Part shown: piece by piece, positions 8,413-53,400 of the stretch | Numbering within the stretch: the stretch's first letter is position 1 | How the letters are laid out: every line of letters starts with the position of its first letter | NCBI GenBank assembly: GCA_002269645.1 | Contig: NIVC01000094.1 | Span: 620,001-684,000, forward strand | Direction of reading: 5' to 3' | Source: Macrostomum lignano | Taxonomy: Eukaryota | DNA: 64,000 bases | The notes under the pieces: model-generated | Database searches by the model: none | The model's input: the letters and a program-made list of their open reading frames with translations, nothing else | What the model was told of the DNA's origin: nothing | Position numbers and translations under genes: made by a program

Positions 8413-8473
8413 CGGTGTTCTAAAAATAGCACAGCGAAGCAGTGGGCCAATGTGTGACGGTGGTGAATGGGGA

Positions 8474-28379: not shown

Positions 28380-31300
28380 TCTATGATCCCTCGTCCCTCT
28401 TCTCTCCGTGCTTGATCTATTCTATCACCTCTCTTCTCTCCGTGCTTGATCTATTCTATCCCCTGCTCTCTATGTTTGATCTATTCTATCCCCTCCTCTC
28501 CGTGTGTTTAATCTATTCTATCCCCTCCTCTCCGTGTGTTTGATCTATTCTATCCCCTCCTCTCTGTGTTTGATCTATTCTATCCCCTGCTCTCTGTGTT
28601 TGATCTATTCTATCCCCTGCTCTCTATGTTTGATCTATTCTATCCCCTCCTCTCTGTGTGTTTGATCTATTCTATCACATCTCTTCTCTCCGTGCTTGAT
28701 CTATTCTATCCCCTGCTCTCTGTGTTTGATCTATTCTATCCCCTCCTCTCCGTGTGTTTGATCTATTCTATCCCCTCCTCTCCGTGTGTTTGATCTATTC
28801 TATCCCCTCCTCTCTGTGTTTGATCTATTCTATTCCCTGCTCTCTGTGTTTGATCTATTCTATCCCCTGCTCTCTGTGTTTGATCTATTCTATCCCCTGC
28901 TCTCTGTGTTTGATCTATTCTATCCCCTGCTCTCTGTGTTTGATCTATTCTATCCCCTCCTCTCTGTGTTTGATCTATTCTATCACCTCCTCTCTGTGTT
29001 TGATCTATTCTATCACCTCCTCTCTGTGTTTGATCTATTCTATCCCCTCCTCTCTGTGTTTGATCTATTCTATCCCCTCCTATCTGTGTTTGATCTATTC
29101 TATCACCTCCTCTCTGTGTTTGATCTATTCTATCCCCTCCTCTCTGTGTTTGATCTATTCTATCCCCTCCTCTCCGTTTGTTTGATCTATTCTATCCCCT
29201 CCTCTCTGTGTTTAATCTATTCTATCCCCTGCTCTCTGTGTTTGATCTATTCTATCCCCTCCACTCCGTGTGTTTGATCTATTCTATCCCCTCCTCTCCG
29301 TGTGTTTGATCTATTCTATCCCCTCCTCTCTGTGTTTGATCTATTCTATCCCCTCCTCTCTGTGTTTGATCTATTCTATCCCCTACTCTCTGTGTTTGAT
29401 CTATTCTATCCCCTCCTCTCTGTGTTTGATCTATTCTATCCCCTCCTCTCTGTGTTTGATCTATTCTATCCCCTCCTCTCTGTGTTTGATCTATTCTATC
29501 CCCTCCTCTCTGTGTTTGATCTATTCTATCACCTCCTCTCTGTGTTTGATCTATTCTATCCCCTGCTCTCTGTGTTTGATCTATTCTATCCCCTGCTCTC
29601 TGTGTTTGATCTATTCTATTCCCTCCTCTCTGTGTTTGATCTATTCTATCCCCTCCTCTCTGTGTTTGATCTATTCTATCCCCTGCTCTCTGTGTTTGAT
29701 CTATTCTATCCCCTCCTCTCCGTTTGTTTGATCTATTCTATCCCCTCCTCTCTGTGTTTAATCTATTCTATCCCCTGCTCTCTGTGTTTGATCTATTCTA
29801 TCCCCTCCACTCCGTGTGTTTGATCTATTCTATCCCCTCCTCTCCGTGTGTTTGATCTATTCTATCCCCTCCTCTCTGTGTTTGATCTATTCTATCCCCT
29901 CCTCTCTGTGTTTGATCTATTCTATCCCCTACTCTCTGTGTTTGATCTATTCTATCCCCTCCTCTCTGTGTTTGATCTATTCTATCCCCTCCTCTCTGTG
30001 TTTGATCTATTCTATCCCCTCCTCTCTGTGTTTGATCTATTCTATCCCCTCCTCTCTGTGTTTGATCTATTCTATCACCTCCTCTCTGTGTTTGATCTAT
30101 TCTATCCCCTGCTCTCTGTGTTTGATCTATTCTATCCCCTGCTCTCTGTGTTTGATCTATTCTATTCCCTCCTCTCTGTGTTTGATCTATTCTATCCCCT
30201 CCTCTCTGTGTTTGATCTATTCTATCCCCTGCTCTCTGTGTTTGATCTATTCTATCCCCTGCTCTCTGTGTTTGATCTATTCTATTCCCTCCTCTCTGTG
30301 TTTGATCTATTCTATCCCCTCCTCTCTGTGTTTGATCTATTCTATCCCCTCCTCTCTGTGTTTGATCTATTCTATCCCCTCCTCTCTGTGTTTGATCTAT
30401 TCTATCACCTCCTCTCTGTGTTTGATCTATTCTATCCCCTCCTCTCTGTGTTTGATCTATTCTATCACCTCCTCTCTGTGTTTGATCTATTCTATCCCCT
30501 CCTCTCTGTGTTTGATCTATTCTATCCCCTCCTCTCTGTGTTTGATCTATTCTATCCCCTCCTGTCCGTATGTTTGATCTATTCTATCCCCTCCTCTCCG
30601 TATGTTTGATCTATTCTATCCCCTCCTCTCTGTGTTTGATCTATTCTATCACCTCCTCTCTGTGTTTGATCTATTCTATCCCCTCCTCTCTGTGTTTGAT
30701 CTATTCTATCCCCTCCTCTCTGTGTTTGATCTTTTCTATCCCCTCCCTTCACTGTGTTTGATCTATTCTATCCCCTCCTCTCTGTGTTTGATCTATTCTA
30801 TCCCCTCCCTTCACTGTGTTTGATCTATTCTATCCCCTCCTCTCTGTGTTTGATCTATTCTATCCCCTCCCTTCACTGTGTTTGATCTATTCTATCCCCT
30901 CCTCTCTGTGTTTGATCTATTCTATCCCCTCCTCTCTGTGTTTGATCTTTTCTATCCCCTCCCTTCACTGTGTTTGATCTATTCTATCCCCTCCTCTCTG
31001 TGTTTGATCTATTCTATCCCCTCCCTTCACTGTGTTTGATCTATTCTATCCCCTCCTCTCTGTGTTTGATCTATTCTATCCCCTCCCTTCACTGTGTTTG
31101 ATCTATTCTATCCCCTCCTCTCTGTGTTTGATCTATTCTATCCCCTCCTGTCCGTATGTTTGATCTATTCTATCCCCTCCTCTCCGTATGTTTGATCTAT
31201 TCTATCCCCTCCTCTCTGTGTTTGATCTATTCTATCCCCTCCTCTCTGTGTGTGATCTATTCTATCCCCTCCTCTCTGTGTTTGATCTATTCTATCCCCT

Positions 31301-31515
31301 CCTCTCTGTGTTTGATCTATTCTATCCCCTCCTCTCTGTGTTTGATCTATTCTATCCCCTCCTCTCTGTGTTTGATCTATTCTATCCCCTCCTCTCTGTG
31401 TGTGATCTATTCTATCCCCTCCTCTCTGTGTTTGATCTATTCTATCCCCTCCTCTCTGTGTTTGATCTATTCTATCCCCTCCTCTCTGTGTGTGATCTAT
31501 TCTATCCCGTCCTCT
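28380..31515. repeat. Large 30-bp satellite array (TTTGATCTATTCTATCCCCTCCTCTCTGTG), ~100 copies, with higher-order block duplication
   Basis: Tandem periodicity. The variant pattern repeats with a 546-bp offset (29270 vs 29816). Confidence 0.97.
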
Positions 31516-32409
31516 CTTCACAGTATTTGCTAAATCCTCTCCTCTCATATATTTATTTTTCAGCTCACTTTGCAAGGAATTTCAAATGCAATTTCCTTTC
31601 CTACTGCAATTTCCCACTATTGTCTGTTGCGCTTCTGTCTCCCTGCCCCTCTCTTTCTGCTTTTTTATTATTTCTTTCTCATTCTTTGCGCCGCATTCCG
31701 ATCGTTTCCCTCTCTGATTTGCTTTTTTTCAATTCTGTCCTCCCAAGCAAGCAAACAATTGCTTGGCTGTGTCTGGATTTGCATGGTTGCTGCTTGAACG
31801 GAAGCATTTGCATATAGCAGTATGCTGCGGCCCTGCTGGCCATTTCTCGGTTTTCGTCCGACTGCAGGCTGCAGCTCTGCTTTACCCCGCAACCCCGCCT
31901 GTGTTGGGGGATCGGAGGTTGGGGCTGGGTGGCACCCGGTGAGGTGGCGGCGCAGCCAGAAATCAGAGAGAATAATCAATAGGGCTCAAAACCGCCTCCG
32001 CCGCTTCTCCCTCCTTGTTCTACTGTTTTTGCCCGACTCGCACGCGCTCCGCTCTCTTCTCTGTCTACCTTTCTCTTGCTTTACTTTACATTTTCTTTTC
32101 TCGAACGATTTTGCGTTTCCATGTACGTTGTTGATAAGCCTGGGGGGGGGCATACTTCCTTGGCCCACTGATTGGCCTGGTCAGCGTGCAAGTCTCGCCT
32201 GCACTTCAATATTTGATATCTTTCTCTCCCAGGCTAGAAAATTTATGCAACAAAAGCGGTGCAAAAACACTGCTTTTGCCTGTTGTCTACCTTTTTAGGT
32301 AGCGAATCAATTGACAGCTTATAGTCAACTGCTTTCACTTGCGTGCAAGCAAAATGAACTGTAAGATATGAATGGTTAACCCACTGGGCCAGCGAGCTGA
32401 CGGATCGAC

Positions 32410-35400: not shown

Positions 35401-38400
35401 ATTTTTCCTACTATCTTACTGATACGCCCTTGGACAGTAGGCTAGTAAGAAAAAGTAGCGTAACCAAACCAAACTGCAACTAACTATCGGCACTACTGCT
35501 TTTTTGAGTGCAGGCCTCAGCTGACTAACCGTGGTCCCCAAGCGTCACTCAGTCGCTAGCTGTATGGCACAGTTTTTGGGACAAGTGGCGCGCAGTTTCC
35601 CTCATCTAAACATATCCTGGTGCTTAGCGCTAGTGGGACGAAAGATAGTAAAAAATTTTAAGGTCTTCCCTATTTTTTAACAAGCTTCTCCCCGGATTTT
35701 CGATTTCATAGGGCAAAAAGTTTCTCTCAGGGAGAATTAGTCACCCCGCCCGCCACTTAAACTTCTCTCCTGCCTTTAAGCTTTGCTTCTTCTCTTTTAT
35801 AGCGAGCAGCAGCAAGGCCGAAAGAAGAGACGCAGCTTCCTGTCTAGGCTTGGCAGCAGCTACCGGATGAAGCACAAGCAGCAACAGCATCAGCAGCAGC
35901 ACCTGGCTGTGCCGCAGACTCCTGGAGACCACGACTGGGTGCTCGTCAGCTCGGGACGGTGCGCTGTGTGCGAGGCTGAGGATGGAGCTGGGTGCCGGCT
36001 CAGGTGCCGGGGTGAGGACCTGGTTCTGACTTTCCAGTTGTCTGACTGACCCTGACTCTCTGATTGGCTGTCTGACTCTCTCACTCATATGGTTTCCTGT
36101 CTCCCTGTCTCTCCGACTCTGACTCTGACTGTCCCCATTGCCAACCAGTCGCCAACTAATGCTAGCAACATGTCGCACACTCGCAGTCACAACTTCATCT
36201 CTCCGTGCCCCCCGCCTCAACAGTCTGCCAGCTTACTGTGCACAGCGCTGATCAGTGCCGCGGCCGCGTGGTCGCCTGCCTGCCGGCCATCGCTGAGACC
36301 CCGCAGCAGGGCGCTTCGGCCGCTGCCCCAGCCGCTGCTACAGCCGCGGTGAAGCCGGAGGTCGCCCTAGCGGTGGAGCTGTTCAAGAAGAAGAAGGTTT
36401 GTTTGTGTATTTGTAGCAACATAGAGAGAGATGTTAAGGCTTAGTGTGTAGAGAATTGAAGAGGCTGGTAGACAGGTAGACACAAGAGTATGGCAAATAA
36501 TAAATAATAGAAAAGACAGAGGGGGGCAAGAAGGAAGGGAGTCGATTTCCGATGTTGTAGCAAAAATAGCGAGTGAACTTTAGAGCCAAAAGCCAATTTA
36601 AAGCCAAATCCCTTAAAGCATTGGCGTCGCACACGTATAGAGAATCTAGTGAGTCTAGCGACGTAAACAAAGCAAAGATCGAAAAAGACGCCAGCCAACA
36701 TTAGACCCATTAAAACTGGCACTTCCTGTTCGTTATCTATGCTTGCAGTTGAAATGCAAGGAGCAGAACTCCCAGACTGTTGGTTGACTAGTCCATTAAC
36801 CCGGTTGCTTTACTGCACCACTGATTTTTCCTTTCTCTTATCGGGTCTTAACTGCACCAACACCAGTAAGGCATTGAAATTTAATCCACTACTGTGTAGG
36901 AGTCTCTAAAATTGCATTTGTTGACGCAATAACGGGGTATCAGTCACAGAATATCAGCTTTAAAAAGACTGTTTTGGTTCGGGTTGGGACTCGGATTTCC
37001 TGGCTGCTTCCTTCTACGGGTAGCTCGTATAAGGAGAAGGGCTGGGTTAAATGCGGTTTTGCAAGAAGTCAGAGCGCCGCTGTGGCTTATCTTTGTTATT
37101 GATTTTTCCTACTTTCTGTTCAGTTTAGAAAATCTGCGGCTAATTTTCGACAGACTTGTTATCAAAAGTGAAGATCGAGGGTCCAGAAAATCACGTGATA
37201 CTTTACTATCAGGGGTACAGAGAGTAATGTACATTCGACTTAGCAAGCGTGGCTAATAATGTACATGTAGGCTGGCTTAACTGCCGGGGGGCCCGAGGCG
37301 GGGCAATAAAATGGGGGGGGGTAGAAAAGTAACGCTGGGGTCTTTATGTTTTGTATTAGTTTAATTTTAGTTAATTCGATTTAATGGCCCAAACAAATTA
37401 GCTAAGGTCAAAGGATCTCTTTGTGCTCCAATTGATGTGGAATTCCTTGGACGACACAATACTACTACTGAATTGAAGAGAAAAATAAGTAGCTTAATAG
37501 CATTATGCTAAACTAGTCAGCTACCTAAATTTGACGTATTGGGTATCTGTCTGTACTGTACTATCAGTTGTTTTGTGTTCTAATATCAAATAGGAATTTT
37601 TAGAACTTTGTTGTAACCCGGGTCGGCTTGGGTGCCCAGTCCCGAGTACAATATATATTATATGTGATATAACAGGCGTTGTGACGCTCTGTCTGTACTT
37701 TTATGAATACGACGAGCAGGCGTGGCGACGCTCTGCGATAATAATTTGATCCCTCTGGTGTTGTGACACTCAGAGTTCACGCTGCGGCTCGAGGTGTGGT
37801 GACACTCTCGAGTGCTTCTATTCTCTATACCGTAGGGCGTACGCAATATATGGTAAACGGTACCGTACTACAGAAGCTATATGGTCTCCCGGCGTTATGA
37901 CGCTCTGGCAAGAATTCGGCCTAGCAAGCTTCCCGAAAAGAAAGGACTCAAACAGCAGGCGGCTTACCAGTGGCCAGATGACTGTTCACCGTTTATTATT
38001 CGCAGGTCTCAAGCGCAGTTTCCGACTTCTTCTTAATTCTCCAAGACTCTTCTCAATTAGGCTATTGTCTTTCTTTTATCGAAGTAGCTAATGTTGCTGT
38101 TTCTTTTATCAGGTCTCGCGCTTGCACTCTCGGAGCACACCAAAACACAAAAAGCACGCAGGTGGTGGGCAAGAGCCAGAGTCGCACCATAAATAGCACC
38201 CAAACCCTGGGGCAGACGGCCCCACCGGCTAAGCTCACCAAAACAAACCACGCCGGCCCAGCCAATCAAAACCCCGCCTAAGGGGGGAGGGGCAGCACCC
38301 GCGCCAAAGCTGGCCCGGCCGCAGCCAACCAGCCCTGAGCACGGGGCAGGGGCACGGCTGGGGAGGGGCACGCGCAAAGCCCGGCCGGCGGCCAAACCCT

Positions 38401-41400
38401 GCCACGCCCGCCAACCCCCCCAACCAGCCCCAAAGTGCAACGCGCCCTGCCAACTGACAAGGGCGCATGCACTACACCCTCCCCTCCTAAAAAAAAACAG
38501 GGCGGAGCTCGAACCACGGCGACTGGGATTCCAAATTTCAAATAACAAAGCAAAAAAAATCAAAAACAACAAATAAATTGGAAACAAACTAATGCAAAGG
38601 GGAAAAAGAAAAATGGTTGCCGCAAAAGAAATATAAAAAAAATACTGGTTTTCTGCACGCAAGTTCGTCAGAGCAACCACGGGGCACGGAATAGGCTTTA
38701 CATCAAAGCTGGCGCCACAGAAAACCATCGCAGGTGGCCGGCAGGACGCGCAGGTGGCCGGCAGGAAGCGCAGATGGCCGGGCGGGAAGCGCAGGTTGCC
38801 GACGCAGAAGCCGGCAGGAAGCGCACGTGGCCGCCGCAGAAGCCGGCAGGAAGCGCACGTGGCCGCCGCAAAAGCCGGCAGGAAGCGCAGGTGGCCGCCG
38901 CAGAAGCCGGCAGGAAGCGCAGGTGGCCGCCGCAGAAGCCGCTGAGCCATTCCCCCAGGAAGCTTGACCCCACTAGCAAGCAAATAAACCCATACAGTAC
39001 GAGCGTAACAACATACATACAAGTAAGCAGAAAATACAGTATGAATCGGAACTGGGCACCCTAGCGAACCCGAAGTCCAGGGAGACCGACGCAGCTTTTC
39101 AGGACCTCGAGCAGCCTGCCGGGCCGGCGCAAACCGAACAGCGGGATGAGCTCGTGACAGAGCTGTCGGACGAAACAATCAAAACTCTGCCTAGACCAGT
39201 AACGGCGGCCTGCTCTCTGACGCTTTACCGGAGCGATATCTCTGCGGATGAAGAACAACGCCTGCAGCAGGACCATTGACAGTGCGCTCCTCGGTTCTCG
39301 CTGCGAGTCTCGAAACAGCCGTCTCATAGCCGTGAGCACTGACACGATTCCGTCCGACTGTCCAGCCAAAATATGCTTCATCAAACGATGGCGGAGCTGA
39401 CGCGCAGCTGCCGATAACGACAGCTTTTCATCATCCCATATTGCTCCCGACGCGCGATGTGAGACAACCTCCTTGCTTTCCGGTACATCGATCTCCATAG
39501 CTTCTGACTCACTACTTCCGGAGGAGCCATCCGATGCCAGCAACTCGTCTTCTTCTTCTGTGTCGATGCTACACTCATCCGACTCCTCGCTCTCATCGTC
39601 GTCCGAGATTAGAATGTAGCCATCCGCTTCGTAATCGTTCCTCTGTCCCTGTCTCCCCTGCCTGAGACCAGCTTCCTTGCGCTGAGCTTCTTCAACTTCT
39701 CGCCTTTGCTGTACTCCCTCTTCGATGTCCGCCGGCATTCTTACACCAGTAGGAGGTATGAACGTCATTGCGAAGGTTACAGCCTCGTCATACGGGATTG
39801 ATTTATCGCCCAACTGGTCGTACATCGCTCGGCGATATGGACACGATAGAATTCTACCAGCAGTCTCAATTTCTTGGAAACGGCGTCCTGCGAGTTCCTT
39901 GTCCGGGTGCTTGTCCGGGTGCCAGAAGAGCGCTAGCTGTCGATAGACTCGCCTGATCTCGGCACGTTCGGCTGTGTGTCCGACTTGGAGGACAGCGTAC
40001 AAATCCATCTGCAAAGCAACGTACTCAAACCTGCGACACACTGTCCCTGACTCCAGATTCTACTCCTGCTCCCCTCTTGCCAGAGCGTCATCTCCTCGGA
40101 CCGTGGCCCGCGGTACCCTGCATCGTAAAGTCCCAGCGCAAATTCGAGTTGTCACCGGATGCCAGTCCGAATACCCTCCACCGATGCATAGATTTTGTAG
40201 GCAAAATTTGATTCTCGTCAAAACTTCGATGAAGATGCGATTAAAATGACTTAATGACGCATTAACGAATTTCTTGAATGACGCATTGGCGAACTGCTCG
40301 TACTCATGATGAATGATGCATTGATGAAGTACTCGTATTTATGATGAATGACGCATTCGCGAAATATTTTTCTGGCTTTTAACGATAATCGCATATGAAA
40401 CTGATGAGACTTCACGATGACGAGTAACCCATTAGAATGTCACTGGCTGGCCGTAGCGATCCGGCGGCCGTCGCAACCTTCCGGACCTTCGAGGCTCAGG
40501 TGCAGCTTCCACCGGGTTATGAGTAGGCTGCAGGTCGTCAACCAACTCCATCTGCTCTTCCAGCACCTCGGCGACTTCCTCAGCGTCCTGTGGCGGCATC
40601 AGTTGAGGCCGAGTCCAAGTCTCGCCTTCCGCATCTGCCTCCGAGTCCGTCTCGTCGACCACTTCCGGCGGTGCCGCGGTCCTAACTGGTGTTTCCAGGG
40701 CGGCCGGTCGAGCGAACTTCCGGAGGTTGTTGAAGTGGACGAACTTCGACTTTTTACGATTTGACGGGTTTTCCACTTTGAAGAGCACCTCGGATCTTCT
40801 TTCGAGCACCTTCACTGGGCCGAGCCAGCTTACGTGAAACTTTGCGGCTTCGTCTGGTTTCAGGGCGGGGCTGTAGACGAAGACATGGTCACCCTCCTGA
40901 ATATCGGATCCTCGGGTTCTTTTATCGTACTGGTCCTTCTGTCGCCGCTGATAAGTATTCAACTGCTGTCGAGCAGCGCGATGAGCTGTCTGCAATTTGT
41001 CTTCTAGCTCCTTGACGAAATTTACATGCGAATCGACAGGCTGTGGCGGCTGGTCAGTCAAGTCTATCGGTAGGCGCATCTCCGTGCCATAGATCATGTA
41101 GTGGGGAGTATAACCCGTTGCTCGATGCACGCTTGATCGGTACGCCATTAACGCAGAGCTGACGAATTCTTCCCAGTCGTTTCGTCCTGAGTCCTCTAGG
41201 CAGCACTTGAGGATGGATTTTAAACTTTTATTGAAGTTTTCTACTTGTCCATTTCCGCTCGGATGATAAGCTGTTGTTCTGATCCTGCACATTTCGCGCA
41301 TCACTTGCGATTCGAAGTTTCTTCCTTGGTCGCTGTGCAAAGTACTCGGACACCCATGTTGGCTAATCCATCGATTGAAAAGCGCCCTTGCCACCGTCCT

Positions 41401-44400
41401 TGCCTTCTGGTTGCGAAGCGGGTACGCGTCAGGCCACTTCGTAAACGAATCTTGGACTGTCAGGAGATAAATGTTTCCAGCCTTACTCCGCGGTAGCGGC
41501 CCGACAATGTCCATCATGACGCAATCGAATGGTGCTGCGAATGTCAACGGTTGCAGGGGTGCTCGGTTTCGCTTGCCCGGCTTTGACTTGCAGCAGGTGG
41601 CACAACCGCGAATATATTCTTCAATGGCACGAGACAATCCTGGACGCCAGTAGCGCTGAAGCACTTTAAATTTTGTCTTCGCAAAGCCCATGTGGCCACC
41701 TCCCACTCCCTCGTGTAGGGTTTTCAAGATACGATCCAATGCCTTTCGTGGCAGCACCATTTGATACTCATCGCGCCTGTCTTTGTTTCTCACAAGGAGC
41801 ACGTTCTCTTGCAGCACCAGGTCGTCTTTTCGAGTCCAGACGGCTCTAGCCAGTGGACTCCAAGCTGTCTCGCTTTTATCTGGAACTGGGTTTGAGCCAA
41901 GCGCTTCCTTTACTGTTCTCAAATCGTCGTCTTGATCCTGCTCGCTTGCCAGATTGCCGGCTGAGAATCGTTCAAATTCGACTGCATTTAGTCCTTCTGG
42001 ATGCTGCGCACATGCCGGGCATGTCTCCGCTCCGAAATGTCTCCGTACTGGCTTCCTCGACATTGCGTCCGCGTTGCCATGCGATCGACCTGGTCTGTGA
42101 ACGATGCGGTACTGAAATGGAGCCAACTTCTCCAACCAGCGAGCAACCTGTCCCTCGGCGTCACTGAAGTTTTTTAACCATTGCAGGCTGCTGTGGTCCG
42201 TTCGCAGACAGAACGCTTTTCCAAGCAGATAGTATCTGAACTTCATGATGAAAGTCACAACCGCTAGTAGTTCTAAACGAGTCGTACAATAGTTGCGTTC
42301 GGCTTGATTTAGTGTCTTGGACCCATAGGCGATCACTCGTTCTGCTCCATCTGGCTGGACTTGAGAAAGTACCGCTCCTATGCCCATCTTCGAACTGCCA
42401 TCAGTATCGAGGATAAACTCTCCGGCATCCGGGGAGAAATCCGGATGAGCAATAACCTCTGAACTTGTCATTCGTTCCTTCAATGTTTCGAACGCCAGCT
42501 GCTGTTCCGTTTTCCATTCAAACTTTGCGTCTTTTGTTGTCAATCGAGTTAGAGGCGCTGCTATTGCGGCGAAATCTTTAATAAACTTTCTGTAATAGCC
42601 ACACAGGCCCAAGAATGAATGCAGCTCCGTCGAGGATCGCGGTGTTGGCCAGTTCTTCACTTCTTGAACTTTCTCCTCATCGGTACTGATGCCAGCAGCC
42701 GACAGCGTGTGACCGAGAAATTTCACTTGCTTTTGCAAAAAGTGACACTTCTGGGGCTTCAGGCACAAATTTGCTTGCCGCAACTTGCTGAATATTTCCT
42801 CCAGTCTTCTCAGGTGTTCATCCACGTCGGTTGACCAAACCAGTAGATCGTCGATGTAGACGAGACAGGTTTTCCACATCTGCTTGTCCAGAACGGCTGC
42901 CATCAACCTGGTGAATGTTGCTGGGCTGTTCACTAAGCCGAACGGCATAACCTTCCATCGAAATTGTCCGCGATGCGGCACTGCAAACGCCGTCTTGTCC
43001 TGATCCTGAGGTCTCACCCCTACTTGCCAAAACCCGCTGTGAAGGTCCATTGTCGAGAAGATCTTGGCTCCGTGTACTGCCTCCAGCGCATCATCGACCC
43101 TCGGCATCGGCACTGCATCCTTGACGGTGACCTCATTCAACTTCCGATAATCGACGCACATCCTCATTTCCCCTGATTTCTTCTTTACGCACACCAAAGG
43201 AAAGCACCATGGTGACTGTGCTTCTTCGATCTGCCCCTTTTCCAGCAACTCGTTGACTTGACGATCTACTTCTGGCTGTAAGTGGGGAGGCAGACGACGC
43301 GGTGGGATCTTGATTGGGCGCGCATTCTCGGTGTTAATTTCATGCTCCACCACGGTAGTTAACTTGCTTGAAGTCTGCTTGGTCGTGAACACGTCGCTGT
43401 AACTCCGGACAAGGATTCTAAATTCTTCGTCTTCTTTCGTCGACAGTCCACAGTCGCCGTACGAGTTTGGTAGCAAGTCTGCTTCCGAAGGGCTGTTGCT
43501 GCCTTGGACCTTCGGCTCTTCCTGTGGATCGTCTCCTGACTCTACGGCTAAGAGCTTGATGGTGTTCAACGGTTCGGTGGATTCTAGGGGGCAGAACCAC
43601 CCGAGCGTACAACCTTGGCGAATTCTGACTGGCTCTTCCGTGATATTGATGAGTCGAGTCGGCAGACGGCTGCCGCTATTTGGGATCACTAAGGCCTTAG
43701 CAAGCCAGCGGCCAGCTGCCAAATCGTTCGCTCCGAGATTCTCAGTTAACCGACACACCCTCTGTTCCGTCGTCCTTTGCTCTCCAGCCTTGCTGACAGA
43801 ACTGCTTGATGACCTGGCGGTATTGTGCTGGACCTTGTCGCCAAAATTCTGCAAACGATCGGGCGCTCAGCTTGCCATCGGAACGGGATTGCAGTGTCCT
43901 GCACTGAAAAGACAGCTGTCTTGTAGTCGATGACGCAACTGTTGTCCCTGCAGAAGTCGGATCCCAATACCAGTTGGTACTTCACTCCGCTGACTACCAA
44001 GGCTGGAGTATCTATTACTTTATCAGCGATTGACAGTCGCAACAGGACTGTTCTCTCGATTTCGATCGGGCTGCCGTTTGCTAAGCTAACATAGCCTTCA
44101 GCACCGGCCAAATCTCTGACGCTCTGTTTCGGCATACTTTGGTAGGCTTCCCGTGAGATAATGGTGCAGGAAGCTCCCGAGTCCACTAGCGCGTTCACCC
44201 TCCGCCCTGCGATTGAGGCCGTAACATATATCGACGCAGGATTGATTTGAATTGACTGAGGTGCGTTGACGGTGATTGGGCGCTGCGACTGTGCAAAACC
44301 GGCTAGTTGATGGTGAGGTGCAGTACCGGACGCTGGAGGCTGATGAGGCACTGTAACGGACACTGGATGCTGATGAGACTCAGTACCGGACACTGTAGGC

Positions 44401-47400
44401 TGATGAGGCGCAGTACCGGACACTGGAGGCTGATGAGGCACTGTACCGGACACTGGATGCTGATGAGACACAGTACCGGACACTGGAGGCTGATGAGACG
44501 CTGTACCGGACACTGGATGCTGATGAGGCACTGTACCGGACACTGGAGGCTGATGAGGCGCAGTACCGGACACTGGATGCTGATGAGGCGCAGTACCGGA
44601 CGCTGGAGGCTGATGAGGCGCAGTACCGGACACTGGATGCTGATGAGGCGCAGTACCGGACACTGAATGCTGATGAGGCGCAGTACCGGACACTGGAGGC
44701 TGATGAGGCACTGTACCGGACACTGGATGCTGATGAGATGAAGTACCGGACACTGGATGCTGATGAGGCGCAGTACCGGACACTGGATGCTGATGAGGCG
44801 CAGTACCGGACACTGGATGCTGATGAGCCGCAGTACCGGACGCTGGATGCTGATGAGATGAAGTACCGGACACTGGATGCTGATGAGGCGCAGTACCCGA
44901 CACTGGATGCTGATGAGGCGCAGTACCGGACACTGGATGCTGATGAGCCGCAGTACCGGACGCTGGAGGCTGATGAGGCACTGTAACGGACACTGGATGC
45001 TGATGAGACTCAGTACCGGACACTGTAGGCTGATGAGGCGCAGTACCGGACACTGGAGGCTGATGAGGCACTGTACCGGACACTGGATGCTGATGAGACA
45101 CAGTACCGGACACTGGAGGCTGATGAGACGCTGTACCGGACGCTGGAGGCTGATGAGGCGCAGTACCGGACACTGAATGCTGATGAGGCGCAGTACCGGA
45201 CACTGGATGCTGATGAGGCGCAGTACCGGACACTGGAGGCTGATGAGATGAAGTACCGGACACTGGATGCTGATGAGGCGCAGTACCGGGCGTTTGATGA
45301 TGATGAGATGAGATGACGACTTGTTCGGAGGCTGACGAATTGCAGGGGCTCACTTGCCTCCAGCTGGTGGGCCCCTCTTGCCTTTTCCCGGCTTTGGGCA
45401 CTGGAATGAGAGATGGCCTATCTCCCCGCAGTTGTAGCACTTGACACCGCTACGCTGCTTCGAGCTGGACGGAGCCGCCTGCTTGGATTGTTGCTTGTCT
45501 TGAAGGCCGGGTTCGGGCGGCTCCTGCTGGCCCTGCTGCATCTGCTCCATCCGTCGGATCTTTTCTTCCATTTCCTTTACTTTTTGACGCAGTTGCCGTA
45601 GCTCCTCGTCTTTGCCGGTGTCACCTGTCGACGTTTCGGTGGCAAAGGCATTCAGCCCAGCCCTGGGTCTGGCTTTGGACTGGGTCGAAGACGCCTTCTG
45701 GGCTGCTTCAAGTTGTCTTACTGTTCGAATGGCATCGGTGAGGTTGGCCGTCTGCTGCAGGTACAGTCTTTCTCGGACAGTGTCGGTTACTCGAACACCT
45801 TTTAGAAATCTGTCTTTCGCCAGCTCTGTCCTGGTGTCGGCATCCGCGGTGGGGAAGGCATTGCGCACCAACTCCAGCAGCTCGTCCCCGTAGGTCTCCA
45901 CAGACTCCTTGTCTAGCTGATCTCGATTCGATAATTCAAAACGGTAGTCCTGGGCTGTTCTGTTCATGGTGAACCGCGCCAGCAGTGCATCCGTGAATTC
46001 CCCGTACTCGATGTCGTCTGCCAAGTCCAGCTTATCAACGGCAGCGTAGGCTGTTGTGAGGTCGAGTAGGCCGATCAGGTGCGGCCGCCTGGCTTCTTCT
46101 TCTATACCGACAGCCTCGCAGTACTCGTTGAAACTCTGCAGCCATAGGCTGAAATTCATCGTTGGTATGTACTTGGGCGGCTTCGAGAGTCGTGGCGCTG
46201 CTCGGTCGGCGTTGGCTCTGAGGCGCGCAGCCAGCGCATCGATCAGTTGGTCCATAGCTTGATCACCCATGGCCGAAGTCACTGAATACCGTTGCTACTC
46301 TTTACTCTGAGGTGGTGATAGCTATCAATCTCTGATAACCAATCAGTTGTCTGTCACCGTGATCAATGTCTTTTGCGGTAGGGCAATAGCCGCAGGCGAT
46401 AAGCAAAAGTCGTTTTAATAAGAAAAACGCTCACAATATGACAGCAATTTTCATAGAAAGCAACTGAGCCGACTTTCAATCTTTGGGGACAGGGTCCCTG
46501 TTCGGGCGCCAATTTGTTGTAACCCGGGTCGGCTTGGGTGCCCAGTCCCGAGTACAATATATATTATATGTGATATAACAGGCGTTGTGACGCTCTGTCT
46601 GTACTTTTATGAATACGACGAGCAGGCGTGGCGACGCTCTGCGATAATAATTTGATCCCTCTGGTGTTGTGACACTCAGAGTTCACGCTGCGGCTCGAGG
46701 TGTGGTGACACTCTCGAGTGCTTCTATTCTCTATACCGTAGGGCGTACGCAATATATGGTAAACGGTACCGTACTACAGAAGCTATATGGTCTCCCGGCG
46801 TTATGACGCTCTGGCAAGAATTCGGCCTAGCAAGCTTCCCGAAAAGAAAGGACTCAAACAGCAGGCGGCTTACCAGTGGCCAGATGACTGTTCACCGTTT
46901 ATTATTCGCAGGTCTCAAGCGCAGTTTCCGACTTCTTCTTAATTCTCCAAGACTCTTCTCAATTAGGCTATTGTCTTTCTTTTATCGAAGTAGCTAATGT
47001 TGCTGTTTCTTTTATCAGGTCTCGCGCTTGCACTCTGGGAGCACACCAAAACACAAAAAGCACGCAGGTGGTGGGCAAGAGCCAGAGTCGCACCATAAAT
47101 AGCACCCAAACCCTGGGGCAGACGGCCCCACCGGCTAAGCTCACCAAAACAAACCACGCCGGCCCAGCCAATCAAAACCCCGCCTAAGGGGGGAGGGGCA
47201 GCACCCGCGCCAAAGCTGGCCCGGCCGCAGCCAACCAGCCCTGAGCACGGGGCAGGGGCACGGCTGGGGAGGGGCACGCGCAAAGCCCGGCCGGCGGCCA
47301 AACCCTGCCACGCCCGCCAACCCCCCCAACCAGCCCCAAAGTGCAACGCGCCCTGCCAACTGACAAGGGCGCATGCACTACAGTATAAAGCAGTCAGTCT

Positions 47401-50400
47401 ACTGTATAGAGCAAAGAGAATCAATATTTTCTGTTCCTTTTGTTATTTCCATCTACTAAAAATTTTATACTATACGAAAACACAAAACAGCTTACTGATT
47501 TATCAGTCTCAGTTTCATTTCGGCTCTCTATTGGCATCTTCAAATCAAAACAGAACACAGCCCCATCTGTCCTCAGTAATTTAATACGGTTTAGGCAGGC
47601 AAGCGTGGGGATTTCAAGATTTCGAGGCCTGGGATTCGATCCGAGATTATTGCGGAGAAATTTGGTCGGCTTAAGATGGAAATTCGAGATTGGATTCGTT
47701 CACCTCCACTTGAATTGTTTACGGCTTTGGGGGAAAAAGTGCTCGCATCTGACCCCGTATAGCAATTGAGCGGCTGATGCTCCTAATTAATAATTGCGTT
47801 GGAGTTTGTCTGTAAACTGTAGCTGTCTTATTATTTGTCGATGTCTGAATGCCTCTAAAAGAGGATATTTAGATGCTTCTAACTGTTTGTTATTAAGTAG
47901 CTGTCAAGCGGGTGTTGTCTGTATTCGCCTGTAAGTATCTGTCAAGCTTCGTGTTGTCTGTATTTGCCTGTAAGTATCTGTCAAACCGGCTGTTGTCTGT
48001 AATTTGCCTGTAAGTATCTGTCAAACCGGCTGTTGTCTGTATTTGCCTGTAAGTATCTGTCAAACCGGCTGTTGTCTGTAATTTGCCTGTAAGTATCTGT
48101 CAAACCGGCTGTTGTCTGTATTTGCCTGTAAGTATCTGTCAAACCGGCTGTTGTCTGTAATTTGCCTGTAAGTATCTGTCAAACCGGCTGTTGTCTGTAA
48201 TTTGCCTGTAAGTATCTGTCAAACCGGCTGTTGTCTGTATTTGCCTGTAAGTATCTGTCAAACCGGCTGTTGTCTGTATTTGCCTGTAAGTATCTGTCAA
48301 ACCGGCTGTTGTCTGTATTTGCCTGTAAGTATCTGTCAAACCGGCTGTTGTCTGTAATTTGCCTGTAAGTATCTGTCAAACCGGCTGTTGTCTGTAATTT
48401 GCCTGTAAGTATCTGTCAAACCGGCTGTTGTCTGTATTCGCCTGTAAGTATCTGTCAAACCGGCTGTTGTCTGTATTCGCCTGTAAGTATCTGTCAAACC
48501 GGCTGTTGTCTGTATTTGCCTGTAAGTATCTGTCAAACCGGCTGTTGTCTGTAATTTGCCTGTAAGTATCTGTCAAACCGGCTGTTGTCTGTATTTGCCT
48601 GTAAGTATCTGTCAAACCGGCTGTTGTCTGTAATTTGCCTGTAAGTATCTGTCAAACCGGCTGTTGTCTGTATTCGCCTGTAAGTATCTGTCAAACCGGC
48701 TGTTGTCTGTATTCGCCTGTAAGTATCTGTCAAACCGGCTGTTGTCTGTATTTGCCTGTAAGTATCTGTCAAACCGGCTGTTGTCTGTATTTGCCTGTAA
48801 GTATCTGTCAAACCGGGTGTTGTCTGTATTCGCCTGTAAGTATCTGTCAAGCTTCGTGTTGTCTGTATTTGCCTGTAAGTATCTGTCAAGCGGGTGTTGT
48901 CTGTATTCGCCTGTAAGTGGCTGTCAAGCTTCGTGTTGTCTGTATTCGCCTGTAAGTATCTGTCAAACCGGCTGTTGTCTGTATTCGCCTGTAAGTATCT
49001 GTCAAACCGGCTGTTGTCTGTATTTGCCTGTACGCGTGACTATCTAGTCTGTTGTTTGTAAATGTCTGTAGCTGTTCTGCAATAAGAAACGTCTTCGCCT
49101 GTAGTTATAAACTCGCTATTAATTTTTGTAGACGATGGTTCCACATTTCTGTAAATATTGGCGCATTCTCGAATCTGCACAGTTTGGCGTCATCCCGTCC
49201 GCGATCAGCCCGACAATTGTCAAAATTTTTTCCTCCTTTTTCGACACTCTGTACCCAATTAACCAGCATTCAACCCTACCTGCAAAGCAGAATAAGCCCC
49301 GCAGTCAGCTTCCTTGATGTAATAAAAACCGTGCTAGAAAAAAGTCACTCTTTCAATGTGCTGCTTGTCCCTCTCAATAATCTCGATACTGCAGGGACTA
49401 TTACACGCAATTTCGAGCTGTTTTTTCTGGGCAATGGGAACATCTTGAATCGACAGAATGAAGGCAACCCCACTGACTGCTGCTGGCTTTGCCTTGGTCA
49501 AGGACTACTAAACAGAGAATACTTGCTTTTCGTCTGCTGCACAAAAGAGATTACATGTATCACTGCAGGTAATTATCACTGCAGGTAATTATCACTGCAG
49601 GTAATTATCACTGCAGGTAATTATCCCTGCAGGTAATTATCACTGCAGGTAATTATCACTGCAGGTAATTATCACTGCAGGTAATTATCACTGCAGGTAA
49701 TTATCACTGCAGGTAATTATCACTGCAGGTAATTATCACTGCAGGTAATTATCCCTGCAGGTAATTATCACTGCAGGTAATTATCACTGCAGGTAATTAT
49801 CCCTGCAGGTAGTTATCACTGCAGGTAATTATCACTGCAGGTAATTATCACTGCAGGTAATTATCGCTGCAGGCAATTATCGCGCAACCGCTTACTTGAG
49901 GGCAAATTTACTAGCCTAAATGTTTTGGGTAAAGGGCGAAAACCGGCTGAGCTTTCCGCCCCAAATCCTCTTTCTAGAACCCCCTGTCCCAGCTTGCATC
50001 CAATTGGCTGGCTCCCGTTGATCGTATAAAACTGTTCATAGAGTCGGGCAGAAACAAAAGAGGGGCTTTGAAAAAAGAGAAAAAAGCAGTTTATTGGAAA
50101 TAACAGAAGACACAAATTAGCAAAGCAGAAGACAGATGGATAGAGCGATGCAGGAGCAACGGCACAAGCAGCATCAGCAGAAGCGCCGGTTTCAGACTCA
50201 GGCCCTGCCTCCAAAACCCCCGCCAAAGACTTACCTGATTGCATTGCAGCACCGCACGGCTGCCACCAGCCCGACGCCGCAGTCACAGCCGCCTTTGTCG
50301 CCTCAGTCTCCGGCAGCAGCAACACTTGGGTGAGTTTGTCGAAACGGAATGTTTTGCTAAATGAAATAATCAAATCATCATATTTCTAAATTTAGTTATT

Positions 50401-53400
50401 TTGATGTGCTTCCCTTGTCTCTGCGCCTGTCGAGCTCCGAGCCCCAACAGACGCCCTGTCTGTAGTGGAATTAGTAATTACTGGCTCAGACACCGCATGC
50501 AGATGTTCGTTTGAATCAGCTGCAAGCTGGAATAATGAATATTCATTAATCCTACAGGTTGGTAGCTAAGGTTCAGTGCCACAATTCTGCACTATTAGTA
50601 AAAGACACTACTGTGCAGTCAATGAAAAAAGTGACTTGGTCTCTCGCACTGTGTAAGACGGTGGGATCTGTCCATACAGATCCAAACAGGACTTCATACT
50701 GGCTGTCTTGCGATACATTTGCGATAACTAATGGGATATTGGGGAATGGGAGACAGTCAAAACAGGGATGCATTGTGACTGTAAGACTGGGATGCGGTGA
50801 GACAAGAAATTACTAAGTGAGGATGGGAGACTGAGAGAGGAGAGGGAGCCAGAATGAGGAGAGGGAGACAGAGAGGAGAGGGAGACAAGAGAGGAGAGGG
50901 AGACAAGAGAGGAGAGGGAGACAAGAGAGGAGAGGGAGACAAGAGAGGAGAGGGAGACAAGAGAGGAGAGGGAGACAAGAGAGGAGAGGGAGACAAGAGA
51001 GGAGAGGGAGACAAGAGAGGAGAGGGAGACAAGAGAGGAGAGGGAGACAAGAGAGGAGAGGGAGACAAGAGAGGAGAGGGAGACAAGAGAGGAGAGGGAG
51101 ACAAGAGAGGAGAGGGAGACAAGAGAGGAGAGGGAGACAAGAGAGGAGAGGGAGACAAGAGAGGAGAGGGAGACAAGAGAGGAGAGGGAGACAAGAGAGG
51201 AGAGGGAGACAAGAGAGGAGAGGGAGACAAGAGAGGAGAGGGAGACAAGAGAGGAGAGGGAGACAAGAGAGGAGAGGGAGCCAAGAGAGGAGAGGGAGAC
51301 AAGAGAGGAGAGGGAGCCAAGAGAGGAGAGGGAGACAAGAGAGGAGAGGGAGACAAGAGAGGAGAGGGAGACAAGAGAGGAGAGGGAGACAAGAGAGGAG
51401 AGGGAGCCAGAGAGAGAGGGAGACAAGAGAGGAGAGGGAGCCAGAGAGAGGAGAGGGAACCAGAGAGAGGAGAGGGAACCAGAGAGAGGAGGGAGACAAG
51501 AGAGGAGAGGGAGCCAAGAGAGGAGAGGGAGACAAGAGAGGAGAGGGAGACAAGAGAGGAGAGGGAGACAAGAGAGGAGAGGGAGACAAGAGAGGAGAGG
51601 GAGCCAGAGAGAGAGGGAGACAAGAGAGGAGAGGGAGCCAGAGAGAGGAGAGGGAACCAGAGAGAGGAGAGGGAACCAGAGAGAGGAGGGAGACAAGAGA
51701 GGAGAGGGAGACAAGAGAGGAGAGGGAGACAAGAGAGGAGAGGGAGACAAGAGAGGAGAGGGAGACAAGAGAGGAGAGGGAGCCAGAGAGAGAGGGAGAC
51801 AAGAGAGGAGAGGGAGCCAGAGAGAGGAGAGGGAACCAGAGAGAGGAGAGGGAACCAGAGAGAGGAGGGAGACAAGAGAGGAGAGGGAGACAAGAGAGGA
51901 GAGGGAGACAAGAGAGAAGAGGGAGACAAGAGAGGAGAGGGAGACAAGAGAGGAGAGGGAGACAAGAGAGGAGAGGGAGACAAGAGAGGAGAGGGAGACA
52001 AGAGAGGAGAGGGAGACAAGAGAGGAGAGGGAGACAAGAGAGGAGAGGGAGACAAGAGAGGAGAGGGAGCCAGAGAGAGGAGAGGGAGCCAGAGAGAGGA
52101 GAGGGAGCCAGAGAGAGGAGAGGGAGTCCAGAGAGGAGAGGGAGTCCAGAGAGGAGAGGGAGTCCAGAGAGGAGAGGGAGACAAGAGAGGAGAGGGAGCC
52201 AGAGAGAGAGGAAGACAAGAGAGGAGAGGGAACCAGAGAGAGGAGAGGGAACCAGAGAGAGGAGGGAGACAAGAGAGGAGAGGGAGACAAGAGAGGAGAG
52301 GGAGACAAGAGAGGAGAGGGAGACAAGAGAGGAGAGGGAGCCAGAGAGAGGAGAGGGAGCCAGAGAGAGGAGAGGGAGTCCAGAGAGGAGAGGGAGTCCA
52401 GAGAGGAGAGGGAGTCCAGAGAGGAGAGGGAGTCCAGAGAGGAGAGGGAGTCCAGAGAGGAGAGGGAGCCAGAGAGAGAGGGAGACAAGAGAGGAGAGGG
52501 AGCCAGAGAGAGGAGAGGGAACTAGAGAGAGGAGAGGGAACCAGAGAGAGGAGGGAGACAAGAGAGGAGAGGGAGACAAGAGAGGAGAGGGAGACAAGAG
52601 AGGAGAGGGAGACAAGAGAGGAGAGGGAGACAAGAGAGGAGAGGGAGACAAGAGAGGAGAGGGAGACAAGAGAGGAGAGGGAGACAAGAGAGGAGAGGGA
52701 GACAAGAGAGGAGAGGGAGACAAGAGAGGAGAGGGAGACAAGAGAGGAGAGGGAGACAAGAGAGGAGAGGGAGACAAGAGAGGAGAGGGAGACAAGAGAG
52801 GAGAGGGAGACAAGAGAGGAGAGGGAGACAAGAGAGGAGAGGGAGACAAGAGAGGAGAGGGAGACAAGAGAGGAGAGGGAGACAAGAGAGGAGAGGGAGC
52901 CAGAGAGAGGAGAGGGAGCCAGAGAGAGGAGAGGGAGCCAGAGAGAGGAGAGGGAGTCCAGAGAGGAGAGGGAGTCCAGAGAGGAGGCGGAGAAGCGGTG
53001 AGAAGAGATACACGGGGAGAAGTACAAGGGCAAAGGTAGGGAGCAGCGAACAGATGGAGATAGGCGAGATAGGCAGGAACGTCGGACAAGGGGAGAAAGA
53101 AAGTCAGAACGGTGCGGCAGGCCGGAGGCGCAGCGCAGTCCCTGTGTTTACTCCAGCTGGGCCTGATGGGATCCGAGGCAGAGCCCTTTGCGGCATCGAA
53201 TTTCCCATGCTCCCCCCCGCGCAGCGCAACAGCGTTCGACCATTTTGTGTTCGGATTTCAAGCCAGTCGAACGTTTGATAATTTTGTTCAAGCAGCCGGA
53301 GTCATGCTGGCCATTTTGCCCAAGGCCAGGCGAACGGGACAAAGTGTCTGTTCACTTGTGATTAATAATAATATCCCTGCTACTCTTGATTATCTCCCTG

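Follow-up and report, generated by a model that had tools for sequence, protein, structure and literature searches.

An open reading frame for an HPD J-domain protein between pol and the 3′ LTR of a Ty3/gypsy retrotransposon in the flatworm Macrostomum lignano

A Ty3/gypsy LTR retrotransposon of 9.8 kb occupies positions 37609-47382 of the window (the whole stretch of 64,000 nucleotides of Macrostomum lignano DNA analysed here), and it encloses an open reading frame (J ORF) for a protein with an N-terminal J domain. The J ORF looks like a so far undescribed accessory gene, the known kinds being the accessory ORFs of LTR elements and the J proteins of viruses, and it looks like a real one because all copies examined have it, as do several sister elements that have diverged strongly. 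According to the explanation that we consider the best and, on the whole, probable, the J protein consists of three parts (an N-terminal HPD J domain, a disordered acidic linker and a novel five-helix C-terminal domain), and its gene, as the third gene (ORF3) of a Ty3/gypsy (Ty3/Mdg4) clade, has been passed on together with pol under purifying selection. Members of this clade occur in M. lignano, in sequencing runs (SRR31628392, SRR31628394 and SRR31628435) and in metagenomes (JGI 3300040801). Judging from its domain content, the J protein probably recruits host Hsp70.

The LTR pair was recognised as a direct-repeat match of 37607-38476 with 46513-47382, containing a single mismatch (offset 8906). 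The LTR termini were set from the copies carrying target site duplications (TSDs; L002, L003 and L005), and because the true termini are TGTAG...ACAACA, the final bounds are 46515-47382 for the 5′ LTR (868 bp) and 37609-38476 for the 3′ LTR, both on the minus strand. An 18-nt stretch beginning with TGG (TGGCGCCCGAACAGGGAC, 46494-46511, minus strand), which starts 3 nt past the 5′ LTR, was read from the sequence as a putative primer binding site (PBS); no tRNA genes were detected by ARAGORN in the window or in the copy loci. A polypurine tract (PPT) of 12 nt (AGGAGGGGAGGG, 38477-38488, minus strand) adjoins the 3′ LTR. Tandem arrays of 20-nt and 32-nt units were detected by TRF in the 3′ untranslated region between the stop codon of the J ORF and the PPT (38729-38941, minus strand), and these arrays differ among copies (85-92% identity with many gaps). 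Perfect 4-bp TSDs were found for L002 (GAAG), L003 (CTTA) and L005 (TTTT); at the window/L004 locus, flanked by ATAC and AAGT, a TSD was absent.

The gag ORF (45350-46282, minus strand; ORF list and Pfam) encodes 310 residues with one CCHC zinc knuckle (zf-CCHC, 7.7e-8; matches to Retrotrans_gag and PNMA were weak), and pro-pol (40432-45440, minus strand) encodes aspartic protease, RT, RNase H and integrase (Pfam matches to Asp_protease_2, RVT_1, RT_RNaseH, Integrase_H2C2, rve and Integrase_p58_C). The assignment to Ty3/gypsy is based on two LTRs around gag and pol, the PR-RT-RH-IN order, the PBS-like stretch and the PPT, and the annotated relatives of pol are gypsy-type polyproteins. Integrase comes after RT, which speaks against an organisation like that of Gmr1; the zinc knuckle of gag is of the standard CCHC type. 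Pfam gave no Chromo match in either the pol or the J ORF of the window, and a chromovirus identity was rejected on the integrase C-terminus, where Pfam found no chromodomain. The pol product shares 98% identity with PAA55822.1 of M. lignano, a member of a 17-protein cluster; its further relatives include P0007, P0008 and ENA clusters at 45-50% identity. Additionally, a tandem array in pro-pol (30 nt × 33, 44314-45307; TRF) codes for a decapeptide repeat. The J-carrying element is young. The pro-pol frame is unbroken over 1528-1682 codons in L002-L005 and over 1335 codons in L001, which is truncated by its contig, and it is split in the window, where comparison with five other copies shows one frameshift and where 18 nt are deleted in frame (a gap in comparison with four copies). 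Because its pro-pol is damaged, the window copy need not be active; its J ORF itself is intact.

The J ORF (39061-40008, minus strand; ORF list and Pfam) starts with an ATG at 40008 and ends with a stop at 39061-39063, giving 315 aa with zero internal stops. It shares the minus strand with gag and pro-pol and lies between the pol stop (40432-40434) and the PPT/3′ LTR; coordinates and translation thus agree with the first-pass annotation, which had reported an open 315-aa ORF at this place in the sense of gag-pol. It was not called as a separate gene in the M. lignano annotation. The J domain (residues 2-64, 39817-40005, minus strand) was delimited by Pfam DnaJ, AlphaFold (AF2), Foldseek and sequence matches in the PDB. 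The full N-terminal J domain with an intact HPD that had been claimed was recovered by Pfam PF00226 (65.3 bits at a cutoff of 27.8, E 5.5e-18, profile positions 1-63 of 63), the HPD tripeptide lying in FWHPDKHP, and the AF2 model of the domain (pLDDT 85-90) was superimposed by Foldseek on solved J domains with TM 0.6 to 0.91 and rmsd 1.1-1.9 Å. By phmmer against the PDB, matches (down to 4.5e-12) were obtained only within residues 1-75, and a G/F region, a zinc-finger domain and DnaJ C-terminal domains were absent (no Pfam match to DnaJ_C or DnaJ_CXXCXGXG); since class A/B domains are lacking and the PDB matches end at residue 75, the protein was assigned to class C (type III). A chance resemblance to J domains is ruled out by the Pfam E-value, the superposed model and the restriction of PDB matches to the N-terminal part. 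When the whole ORF was used in a word-indexed homology search, only generic J domains came back, of which the best outside the family matched 21% of the query at 45-50% identity; the nearest cellular J domains are 40-50% identical across ~65 residues, and phage records searched by tblastn yielded generic dnaJ matches only.

The J domain is followed by an acidic, serine-rich linker (residues 119-193, 39430-39654, minus strand), which is predicted to be disordered (AF2 pLDDT <50) and contains 26 D+E and 4 K+R, and by a five-helix C-terminal domain (residues 194-311, 39076-39429, minus strand; alignments A1, A2 and A4, and AF2). The translation contains both features to which the first-pass annotation had pointed, an acidic tract (DDDESEESDECSIDTEEEDE) and the PVKRQRAGRR motif. 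The KRQRAGRR stretch lies inside an invariant motif of the C-terminal domain, R-D ... G-x-R-x-W (RRDI...GRRYW in the window copy). Across the five sequences of A1, 21 residues are invariant, and 20 of these fall within the C-terminal domain; across seven sequences, the number is 13. A C-terminal domain model calculated by AF2 from a five-sequence alignment (pLDDT 83.8, pTM 0.78) has five helices, and the earlier description of the C-terminus as helical and novel was upheld: no match was found in Pfam, and a fold search of PDB and BFVD gave nothing significant (best E about 0.9-1.0). The C-terminal domain is family-specific, novel, compact and undescribed.

Within M. lignano, the J ORF was present at all five independent insertion loci examined (window/L004, L001, L002, L003 and L005) with 99.6-100% nucleotide identity, so that the retention of the ORF by other family copies, on which the first-pass annotation had made its case depend, was observed throughout. 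Three of the five loci have 4-bp TSDs that differ from one another. The ORF is intact at three loci, has lost its stop at one and carries one 1-nt indel at another; an unrelated gypsy element in L002, taken as a control, has no J ORF.

Beyond this family, the non-J part was searched exhaustively by HMMER against 1.84 billion representatives; this search returned five proteins only and revealed the J-gene family. The context of three of these proteins was as follows: an integrase end lies upstream of P0140 and of P0141, and P0143 is on a contig without pol; P0139 is a fused gene model holding pol segments of the element. Among these four contexts (P0139, P0140, P0141 and P0143), the C-terminal domain was not seen outside an element. 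A word-indexed search with the C-terminal profile gave P0142 alone, and a metagenome scan with a three-sequence full-length alignment gave 80 loci matching in the J domain only, with no new family member.

A J homologue was found in five more lineages (L006-L010), the pol or integrase of which is 44-68% identical to that of the window element. An HPD J domain, an acidic linker and the C-terminal domain of roughly 120 residues are common to the J homologues of all lineages, HPD is kept in L006, L007, L008, L009 and L010, and every lineage with a J domain scores 59-69 bits over the full 63-position Pfam profile (cutoff 27.8). The J ORF follows pol at a spacing of 80-425 nt in the four of the five diverged lineages whose contig has the pol end. 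L006 (integrase 52% identical) has its J ORF 245 nt downstream, L008 has an integrase end and a J homologue with three in-frame stops, L007 has a J homologue, and L010, a JGI metagenome contig with pol 54% identical, has the order gag-pol-J. L009 is an LTR-bounded sister family in M. lignano (pol about 55% identical), and its J protein contains a DnaJ domain (4.8e-16) and a Chromo domain (9.2e-9; Pfam Chromo 35.5 bits) encoded 3′ of integrase. The Chromo domain is confined to the L009 J protein, and no remnant of a chromodomain was detected in the window J protein or in P0140-P0143. Identities of integrase and of J name the same closest pair, the window element and L008 (68% and 46-52%, respectively).

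Between lineages, the dN/dS of the J gene is about 0.16-0.40 for pairs with finite dS, ratios that are rough owing to saturation of dS in most pairs of lineages, and five of the six lineages have an open frame, L008 being the exception. Selection on the ORF, as envisaged in the first-pass annotation, is borne out between lineages by these ratios, the open frames and the retained HPD; within the family, five nonsynonymous substitutions against one synonymous are too few to judge selection. Few and mostly nonsynonymous changes are expected within the family because young copies decay after insertion, and the 5:1 excess among copies is compatible with neutrality after insertion.

The same excess could be taken to favour a one-off passive transduction of a host DNAJ fragment by a single copy with no role for the element, and the capture of host sequences is known for LTR retrotransposons; this explanation is nevertheless very improbable, since the J ORF occurs at all five loci and in five lineages diverged as described, directly 3′ of pol in all four with the pol end, the frame has mostly stayed open with the low dN/dS given above, and no close host paralogue was found. 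A J domain uncoupled from Hsp70, serving as a degenerate 'J-like' scaffold or leaving the role to the C-terminal domain alone (RNA export or packaging, or chromatin binding), would agree with the C-terminal domain being conserved at least as well as the J domain, as the distribution of the invariant columns in A1 shows. J-like proteins without Hsp70 coupling, however, typically lose HPD, and here HPD and the complete J profile are kept in every lineage with a J domain; we regard such uncoupling as unlikely, even though RNA export is a function of accessory proteins in other LTR elements, for example CERV of Cer1 (PMC10309623). Of the 'env position' assigned by the first-pass annotation, the place between pol and the 3′ LTR stands, and this place is all that would speak for an env-like gene encoding a membrane fusion glycoprotein. 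We give that reading virtually no credence: the J protein is not env-like because it has no transmembrane segment (the highest 19-residue hydropathy is 1.33), it matches no env Pfam family, its N-terminus is a J domain of cytosolic type, and the predicted structure is that of a soluble, all-helical protein whose acidic linker is disordered.

The spacer between pol and the J ORF (40009-40431, minus strand) comprises 423 nt of non-coding sequence, including a 35-nt × 2.5 repeat at 40275-40363 (TRF), and its 3′ end is a pyrimidine-rich acceptor (...ttgctttgcag) directly before the ATG of J. A YAG precedes this ATG in all six lineages (adjacent in five, 1 nt upstream in one), and the remaining spacer is unalignable. 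The YAG acceptor at the ATG suggests that the J ORF is expressed from a subgenomic mRNA, cis-spliced or spliced-leader (SL) trans-spliced at this site. About 39% of M. lignano genes are trans-spliced, and polycistronic precursors exist (PMC5730564). The acceptor might instead serve a short intron, the removal of which would take out the pol stop and join the J module to the integrase C-terminus. Such a Pol-J (IN-J) fusion, to which the IN-chromodomain fusion of chromoviruses would be an analogue, could draw on a phase-0 GT (a Val codon) located 12-18 nt ahead of the pol stop in all five lineages with the pol end; combined with the AG|ATG acceptor, this would permit an in-frame join in four of the five, and a phase-2 GT in L010 would offset the 1-nt shift of its acceptor. 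The public gene model P0139 links '...DRYGQP' straight to 'MDLYAV...', and the chromodomain inside the J protein of L009 would suit a fusion of this kind. We nonetheless think the fusion quite unlikely. ATG is the invariant first codon past the acceptor in all six lineages, which fits an initiation codon and not an internal exon; the candidate donor GTs are weak in context (e.g., GTCGTC in L008), and their conservation is explained by their location in a conserved peptide motif (RRPPxR..V); P0139 is evidently an artefactual model of 3375 aa, in which most of RT is also skipped.

The reading of the J ORF as a separate third gene can be extended to a mechanism. The J gene lies inside the LTR-bounded unit in all examined copies and is conserved in sister lineages. 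Its subgenomic mRNA would be produced by cis-splicing or by spliced-leader trans-splicing at the conserved YAG, as the sequence suggests, and the HPD J domain of the product, by the biochemistry of J proteins, would dock on host cytosolic/nuclear Hsp70 and trigger ATP hydrolysis, loading Hsp70 onto whatever the C-terminal domain holds. The client might, speculatively, be the Gag particle, integrase, the pre-integration complex or a chromatin-bound factor, and a nuclear or chromatin client is favoured because of the chromodomain in the sister family and the basic GRR-W loop. We tentatively propose, as possible rather than probable, that this flatworm Ty3/gypsy clade has its own (trans-)spliced Hsp70 co-chaperone, whose C-terminal domain, with or without a chromodomain, steers Hsp70 to the nucleoprotein complex of the element or to chromatin at an integration or silencing step.

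Several known systems resemble parts of this arrangement. Polyomavirus large T and small t carry an N-terminal HPD J domain and use host Hsc70 for replication steps. The flatworm protein is like these T antigens in that a genome-encoded N-terminal HPD J domain is joined to an element-specific effector region, as it is to a virus-specific one in the virus, whereas homology stops at the generic J fold, the virus is a dsDNA virus and not an LTR retroelement, and the J gene of the flatworm element is a separate small ORF after pol. Class C cellular J proteins likewise combine an HPD J domain with an unrelated client or localisation domain, but the flatworm protein is encoded by a retroelement, and no cellular protein with its C-terminal domain was found among the 1.84 billion representatives. 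In chromoviruses, a chromodomain is fused to the integrase C-terminus; the Chromo domain of L009 is similarly encoded 3′ of integrase and suggests chromatin reading by an element protein, but it is within a separate J ORF, not in integrase, and the window family is without a detectable chromodomain. Additional ORFs have been described for Ty3/gypsy LTR elements, including plant aORFs (PMC7264820), ORF3 captures in bdelloid rotifers (PMC5408684), an m6A-demethylase domain in orchid Ty3/gypsy elements (PMC9289625) and the CERV accessory protein of Cer1 in C. elegans (PMC10309623). Like the aORFs/ORF3 of Ty3/gypsy elements, the J ORF adds, between pol and the 3′ LTR, a coding region specific to its lineage, of a sort kept across a family and thought to modulate the life cycle of the element; unlike them, it codes for a J domain, an acidic linker, a helical domain of a novel kind and, in one family, a chromodomain. 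No J domain was found among the retroelement aORFs in PMC5408684 or PMC6338049.

Heat-responsive LTR retrotransposons with LTR promoters that contain heat-shock elements (HSEs) have been reported in M. lignano (Ustyantsev et al. 2025, PMC12801592); no DnaJ ORF is mentioned in the main text of their article. The present element shares host, superfamily and the thematic link to heat shock with these families, but its LTRs contain no canonical HSE, a single 1-mismatch site being at chance level, and an HSE link for the J-bearing element was ruled out on this ground. The HSEs that occur within the window are part of a neighbouring Hsp70 gene at 8650-10566; when looked up by exact sequence, neither the J ORF nor this Hsp70 matched a record. 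A search of PMC and bioRxiv in full text brought up no description of a J ORF in LTR retrotransposons (Repbase, GyDB and Dfam lay outside the scope of the search), in keeping with the first-pass annotation, which knew of no such accessory ORF for Ty3/gypsy elements, and neither the M. lignano LTR-retrotransposon study nor the genome paper mentions one.

Retroviruses and LTR retrotransposons depend on host Hsp70/Hsp40 chaperones and, to our knowledge, are thought to borrow these chaperones, not to encode a co-chaperone. If the proposed function is true, chaperone recruitment can become a gene of a retroelement, as it did independently in polyomaviruses, and would here be encoded and selectable, the first case for LTR retrotransposons or retroviruses. 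The C-terminal domain presumably marks the step or the client that needs Hsp70, and the chromodomain-bearing variant points toward a function at the level of chromatin. The element is also a likely example of a retroelement expressing a downstream gene via a conserved splice or trans-splice acceptor in a host with widespread SL trans-splicing, and this host, M. lignano, serves as a transgenic model in which LTR elements are already known to take advantage of the heat-shock response.

The J ORF (ORF3; 315 codons, minus strand, start ATG at 40008, stop codon at 39061-39063) was translated and compared with Pfam-A. DnaJ (PF00226) was matched at residues 2-64 (65.3 bits, E 5.5e-18, profile positions 1-63 of 63), bearing out the full N-terminal J domain of the first-pass annotation, and nothing beyond DnaJ was found in Pfam-A. 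The HPD motif (as FWHPDKHP), the acidic tract DDDESEESDECSIDTEEEDE and the motif PVKRQRAGRR, all read previously from the sequence, were located in the translation. The AlphaFold2 model comprised three regions: the J domain (confident, pLDDT 85-90), a disordered stretch at residues 119-193 (26 D+E versus 4 K+R), and a confident C-terminal domain of five helices (domain model: pLDDT 83.8, pTM 0.78). Solved J domains were the sole Foldseek matches of the J protein model (TM(target) up to 0.91, rmsd 1.1-1.9 Å), and only residues 1-75 were matched by phmmer against PDB sequences. Structural searches with the C-terminal domain model gave no significant hit in PDB (best E 0.88) or BFVD (best E 1.0), and Pfam contained no match, in keeping with the novel helical C-terminus described earlier; because no relative was found in these three collections, the domain is taken as the family-specific module, which presumably binds a client. 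An env-like identity of the J protein was rejected, since no hydrophobic segment was found in it.

Direct repeats at 37607-38476 and 46513-47382 show a single mismatch; comparison with copies bearing target-site duplications (TSDs) set the true LTR ends (TGTAG...ACAACA) and hence the LTRs at 37609-38476 and 46515-47382. The minus-strand unit contains an 18-nt PBS-like stretch beginning with TGG after the 5′ LTR, gag with a CCHC knuckle, an aspartic protease ORF preceded by a tandem array of 33 30-nt units, RT-RNaseH-integrase, a 423-nt spacer, the J ORF, a 3′ UTR of approximately 570 nt with 20-nt and 32-nt tandem arrays, and a 12-nt polypurine tract adjoining the 3′ LTR. Domain and ORF mapping thus placed the J ORF within the LTR-bounded unit on the strand of gag and pol, as proposed. 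Compared with all five other copies, the pro-pol of this copy has one frameshift; it also has an in-frame 18-nt deletion, which recurs in one other record. The copy is young, yet its pro-pol is damaged and its J ORF undamaged. The 30-nt array (44314-45307, minus strand) encodes a PHQHPVSGTA-like decapeptide repeat that precedes the protease core in the pro ORF, and its unit number varies by copy; the window and the fetched record of the same locus (L004) differ by 90 nt. The 3′ UTR arrays (38729-38941, minus strand) vary strongly between copies of the element (85-92% identity, many gaps), and the pol-J spacer holds a 35-nt repeat of 2.5 units (40275-40363, minus strand). Directly upstream of the element lie a 39/40-nt satellite-like array (47827-49110) and a 16-nt array (49478-49957); array sequence upstream of the element also flanks the L004 copy.

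The window pol product is 98% identical to PAA55822.1 (Macrostomum lignano), which represents a 90% cluster of 17 M. lignano members, and five cluster loci (L001-L005) were taken from GCA_002269645.1. L004 is the window locus, with flanks 96-98% identical and the same junctions, and the remaining four are independent insertions, of which L002, L003 and L005 have perfect, differing 4-bp TSDs. The window insertion has no TSD (ATAC versus AAGT; flanks 37595-37608 and 47383-47394), possibly through inter-element recombination or a change in the flank. The J ORF was found in every locus examined (99.6-100% nucleotide identity), answering the question of its presence in other family copies. It is intact in the window locus, L003 and L005 (three amino-acid differences); in L001 (two amino-acid differences) the stop codon is gone, giving a read-through extension, and L002 has one 1-nt indel. 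Only six substitutions were counted within the family, five of them nonsynonymous, too few for dN/dS to be informative; differences of this kind date from after insertion, when each copy evolves neutrally. The NCBI annotation calls the J ORF as a separate gene in none of the five loci. At L004, a RhoGEF/PH-domain gene model on the opposite strand (L004:1-19620) spans the insertion, which probably sits in an intron.

The non-J part (residues 71-315) was searched exhaustively with HMMER against 1.84 billion representatives, and five proteins were returned: P0139 and the diverged relatives P0140-P0143 (31-53% identical). Of these last four, three are full or near-full length, and two combine a J domain with an acidic linker and the C-terminal domain. 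P0139 (3375 aa) is a public chimeric gene model in which pol fragments of the element are joined to the complete J ORF, to the repeat downstream and to unrelated sequence, that is, an annotation artefact hiding the J ORF in a giant "protein". Open J ORFs were found in L006 (Logan SRR31628392; 309 aa, 245 nt after pol, integrase end 52% identical to the window), L007 (Logan SRR31628435; 351 aa, contig without pol), L009 (LTR-bounded M. lignano sister family, P0014; 326 aa, 99 nt after pol, pol approximately 55%) and L010 (JGI metagenome 3300040801; gag-pol-J, 264 aa, 82 nt after pol, pol 54%). In L008 (Logan SRR31628394; integrase block 68%), the J homologue, 324 nt downstream, is interrupted by three in-frame stops and keeps HPD. 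All seven sequences share thirteen invariant C-terminal residues, among them R-D and G-x-R-x-W (window copy, RRDI...GRRYW). The L009 protein (L009:10953-11933) matched DnaJ (4.8e-16) and, over the Pfam cutoff, Chromo (9.2e-9), and has the C-terminal domain of the window protein. Its chromodomain (residues 151-199, 35.5 bits) lies between the J and C-terminal domains, an unusual location in an accessory ORF instead of the integrase.

Between lineages, dN was 0.39-0.73 and dS 1.75-4.6, giving dN/dS of 0.16-0.40 (Nei-Gojobori; finite-dS pairs, dS being saturated in the others), against the value near 1 named beforehand as speaking against the proposal. The window and L008 form the closest pair by both integrase block (68%) and J protein (46-52%), which is consistent with co-inheritance of the two genes. 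As a negative control, a neighbouring unrelated Ty3/gypsy element (L002:1-1682, pol 28% identical) had no J ORF downstream of its pol. Taken together, the presence in every copy examined and in diverged lineages, dN/dS and the integrase/J agreement rule out a one-off capture, and these comparisons show that an open, domain-complete J gene has been retained long-term at the same element position.

In five of six lineages the ATG directly follows a pyrimidine-rich tract whose last three bases are CAG or TAG (window, ...ttgctttgcag/ATG; L006, ...cgctgtag/ATG; L007, ...ctgctgcag/ATG; L008, ...gttttgtag/ATG; L009, ...ctgttacag/ATG), and in L010 one nucleotide stands between the AG and the ATG (...tcctgcag c/ATG); beyond the acceptor, the spacers do not align between lineages. 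Judged by sequence, the pattern is characteristic of a 3′ splice site, with the ATG as the first codon of a predicted downstream exon. The mRNA would arise by spliced-leader (SL) trans-splicing of full-length element RNA or by retrovirus-style cis-splicing from a leader donor. Since approximately 39% of M. lignano genes are trans-spliced and polycistronic precursors make up approximately 7% of its transcription units (PMC5730564), the SL route appears as plausible as cis-splicing. Alternatively, a short intron could run from a conserved phase-0 GT shortly ahead of the pol stop codon to the J acceptor and yield an integrase-J fusion. The geometry allows this in four or five lineages, but the invariance of the ATG and the weakness of the donor contexts speak against it.

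J domains with an HPD motif bind Hsp70 and set off its ATP hydrolysis, and in class-C J proteins a second domain picks the place or client. The element protein has no G/F, zinc-finger or DnaJ C-terminal domain and therefore belongs to class C. Its J domain would dock on host Hsp70 and trigger ATP hydrolysis, and its C-terminal domain would choose the client, as in cellular class-C J proteins and, by analogy, the polyomavirus T antigens; recruitment of Hsp70 is thus a well-founded inference. The protein may act in the nucleus or on chromatin, for example at the pre-integration complex, in target choice or on heterochromatin factors, as hinted by the chromodomain in L009 and by the invariant basic loop; a role in particle assembly or disassembly is also possible. 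Approximately 29 kb from the element lies an intronless gene for a cytosolic Hsp70, the natural partner class (8650-10566, plus strand; 638 aa, Pfam HSP70 E 2.6e-255, ending ...EEVD), preceded by three canonical heat-shock elements (HSEs; 8399-8492, plus strand); this proximity is probably coincidental. Elsewhere in the window, an ORF with a protein-kinase domain fragment was noted at 16772-17875 (plus strand; Pfam PK_Tyr_Ser-Thr, 4.6e-14), and two low-complexity blocks of strong strand skew with long overlapping ORFs on both strands (28000-32000 and 50000-53000) are probably repeats, not genes.

HSEs in LTR promoters give M. lignano LTR elements a heat-shock theme (PMC12801592), which does not apply directly here, as the LTRs of this element hold no canonical HSE. 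The J ORF shares the position of other Ty3/gypsy accessory ORFs. Full-text searches of PMC and bioRxiv yielded no paper describing a J-domain or DnaJ gene in an LTR retrotransposon, in line with the first-pass annotation; the gene may nevertheless already be catalogued in Repbase, Dfam or GyDB. The terms DnaJ, J-domain and chaperone are absent from the main texts of the bdelloid ORF3 paper, the accessory-domain review and the M. lignano LTR-retrotransposon study. The structural and evolutionary claims of the first-pass annotation are supported, and the element is of interest to both transposon and chaperone biologists.
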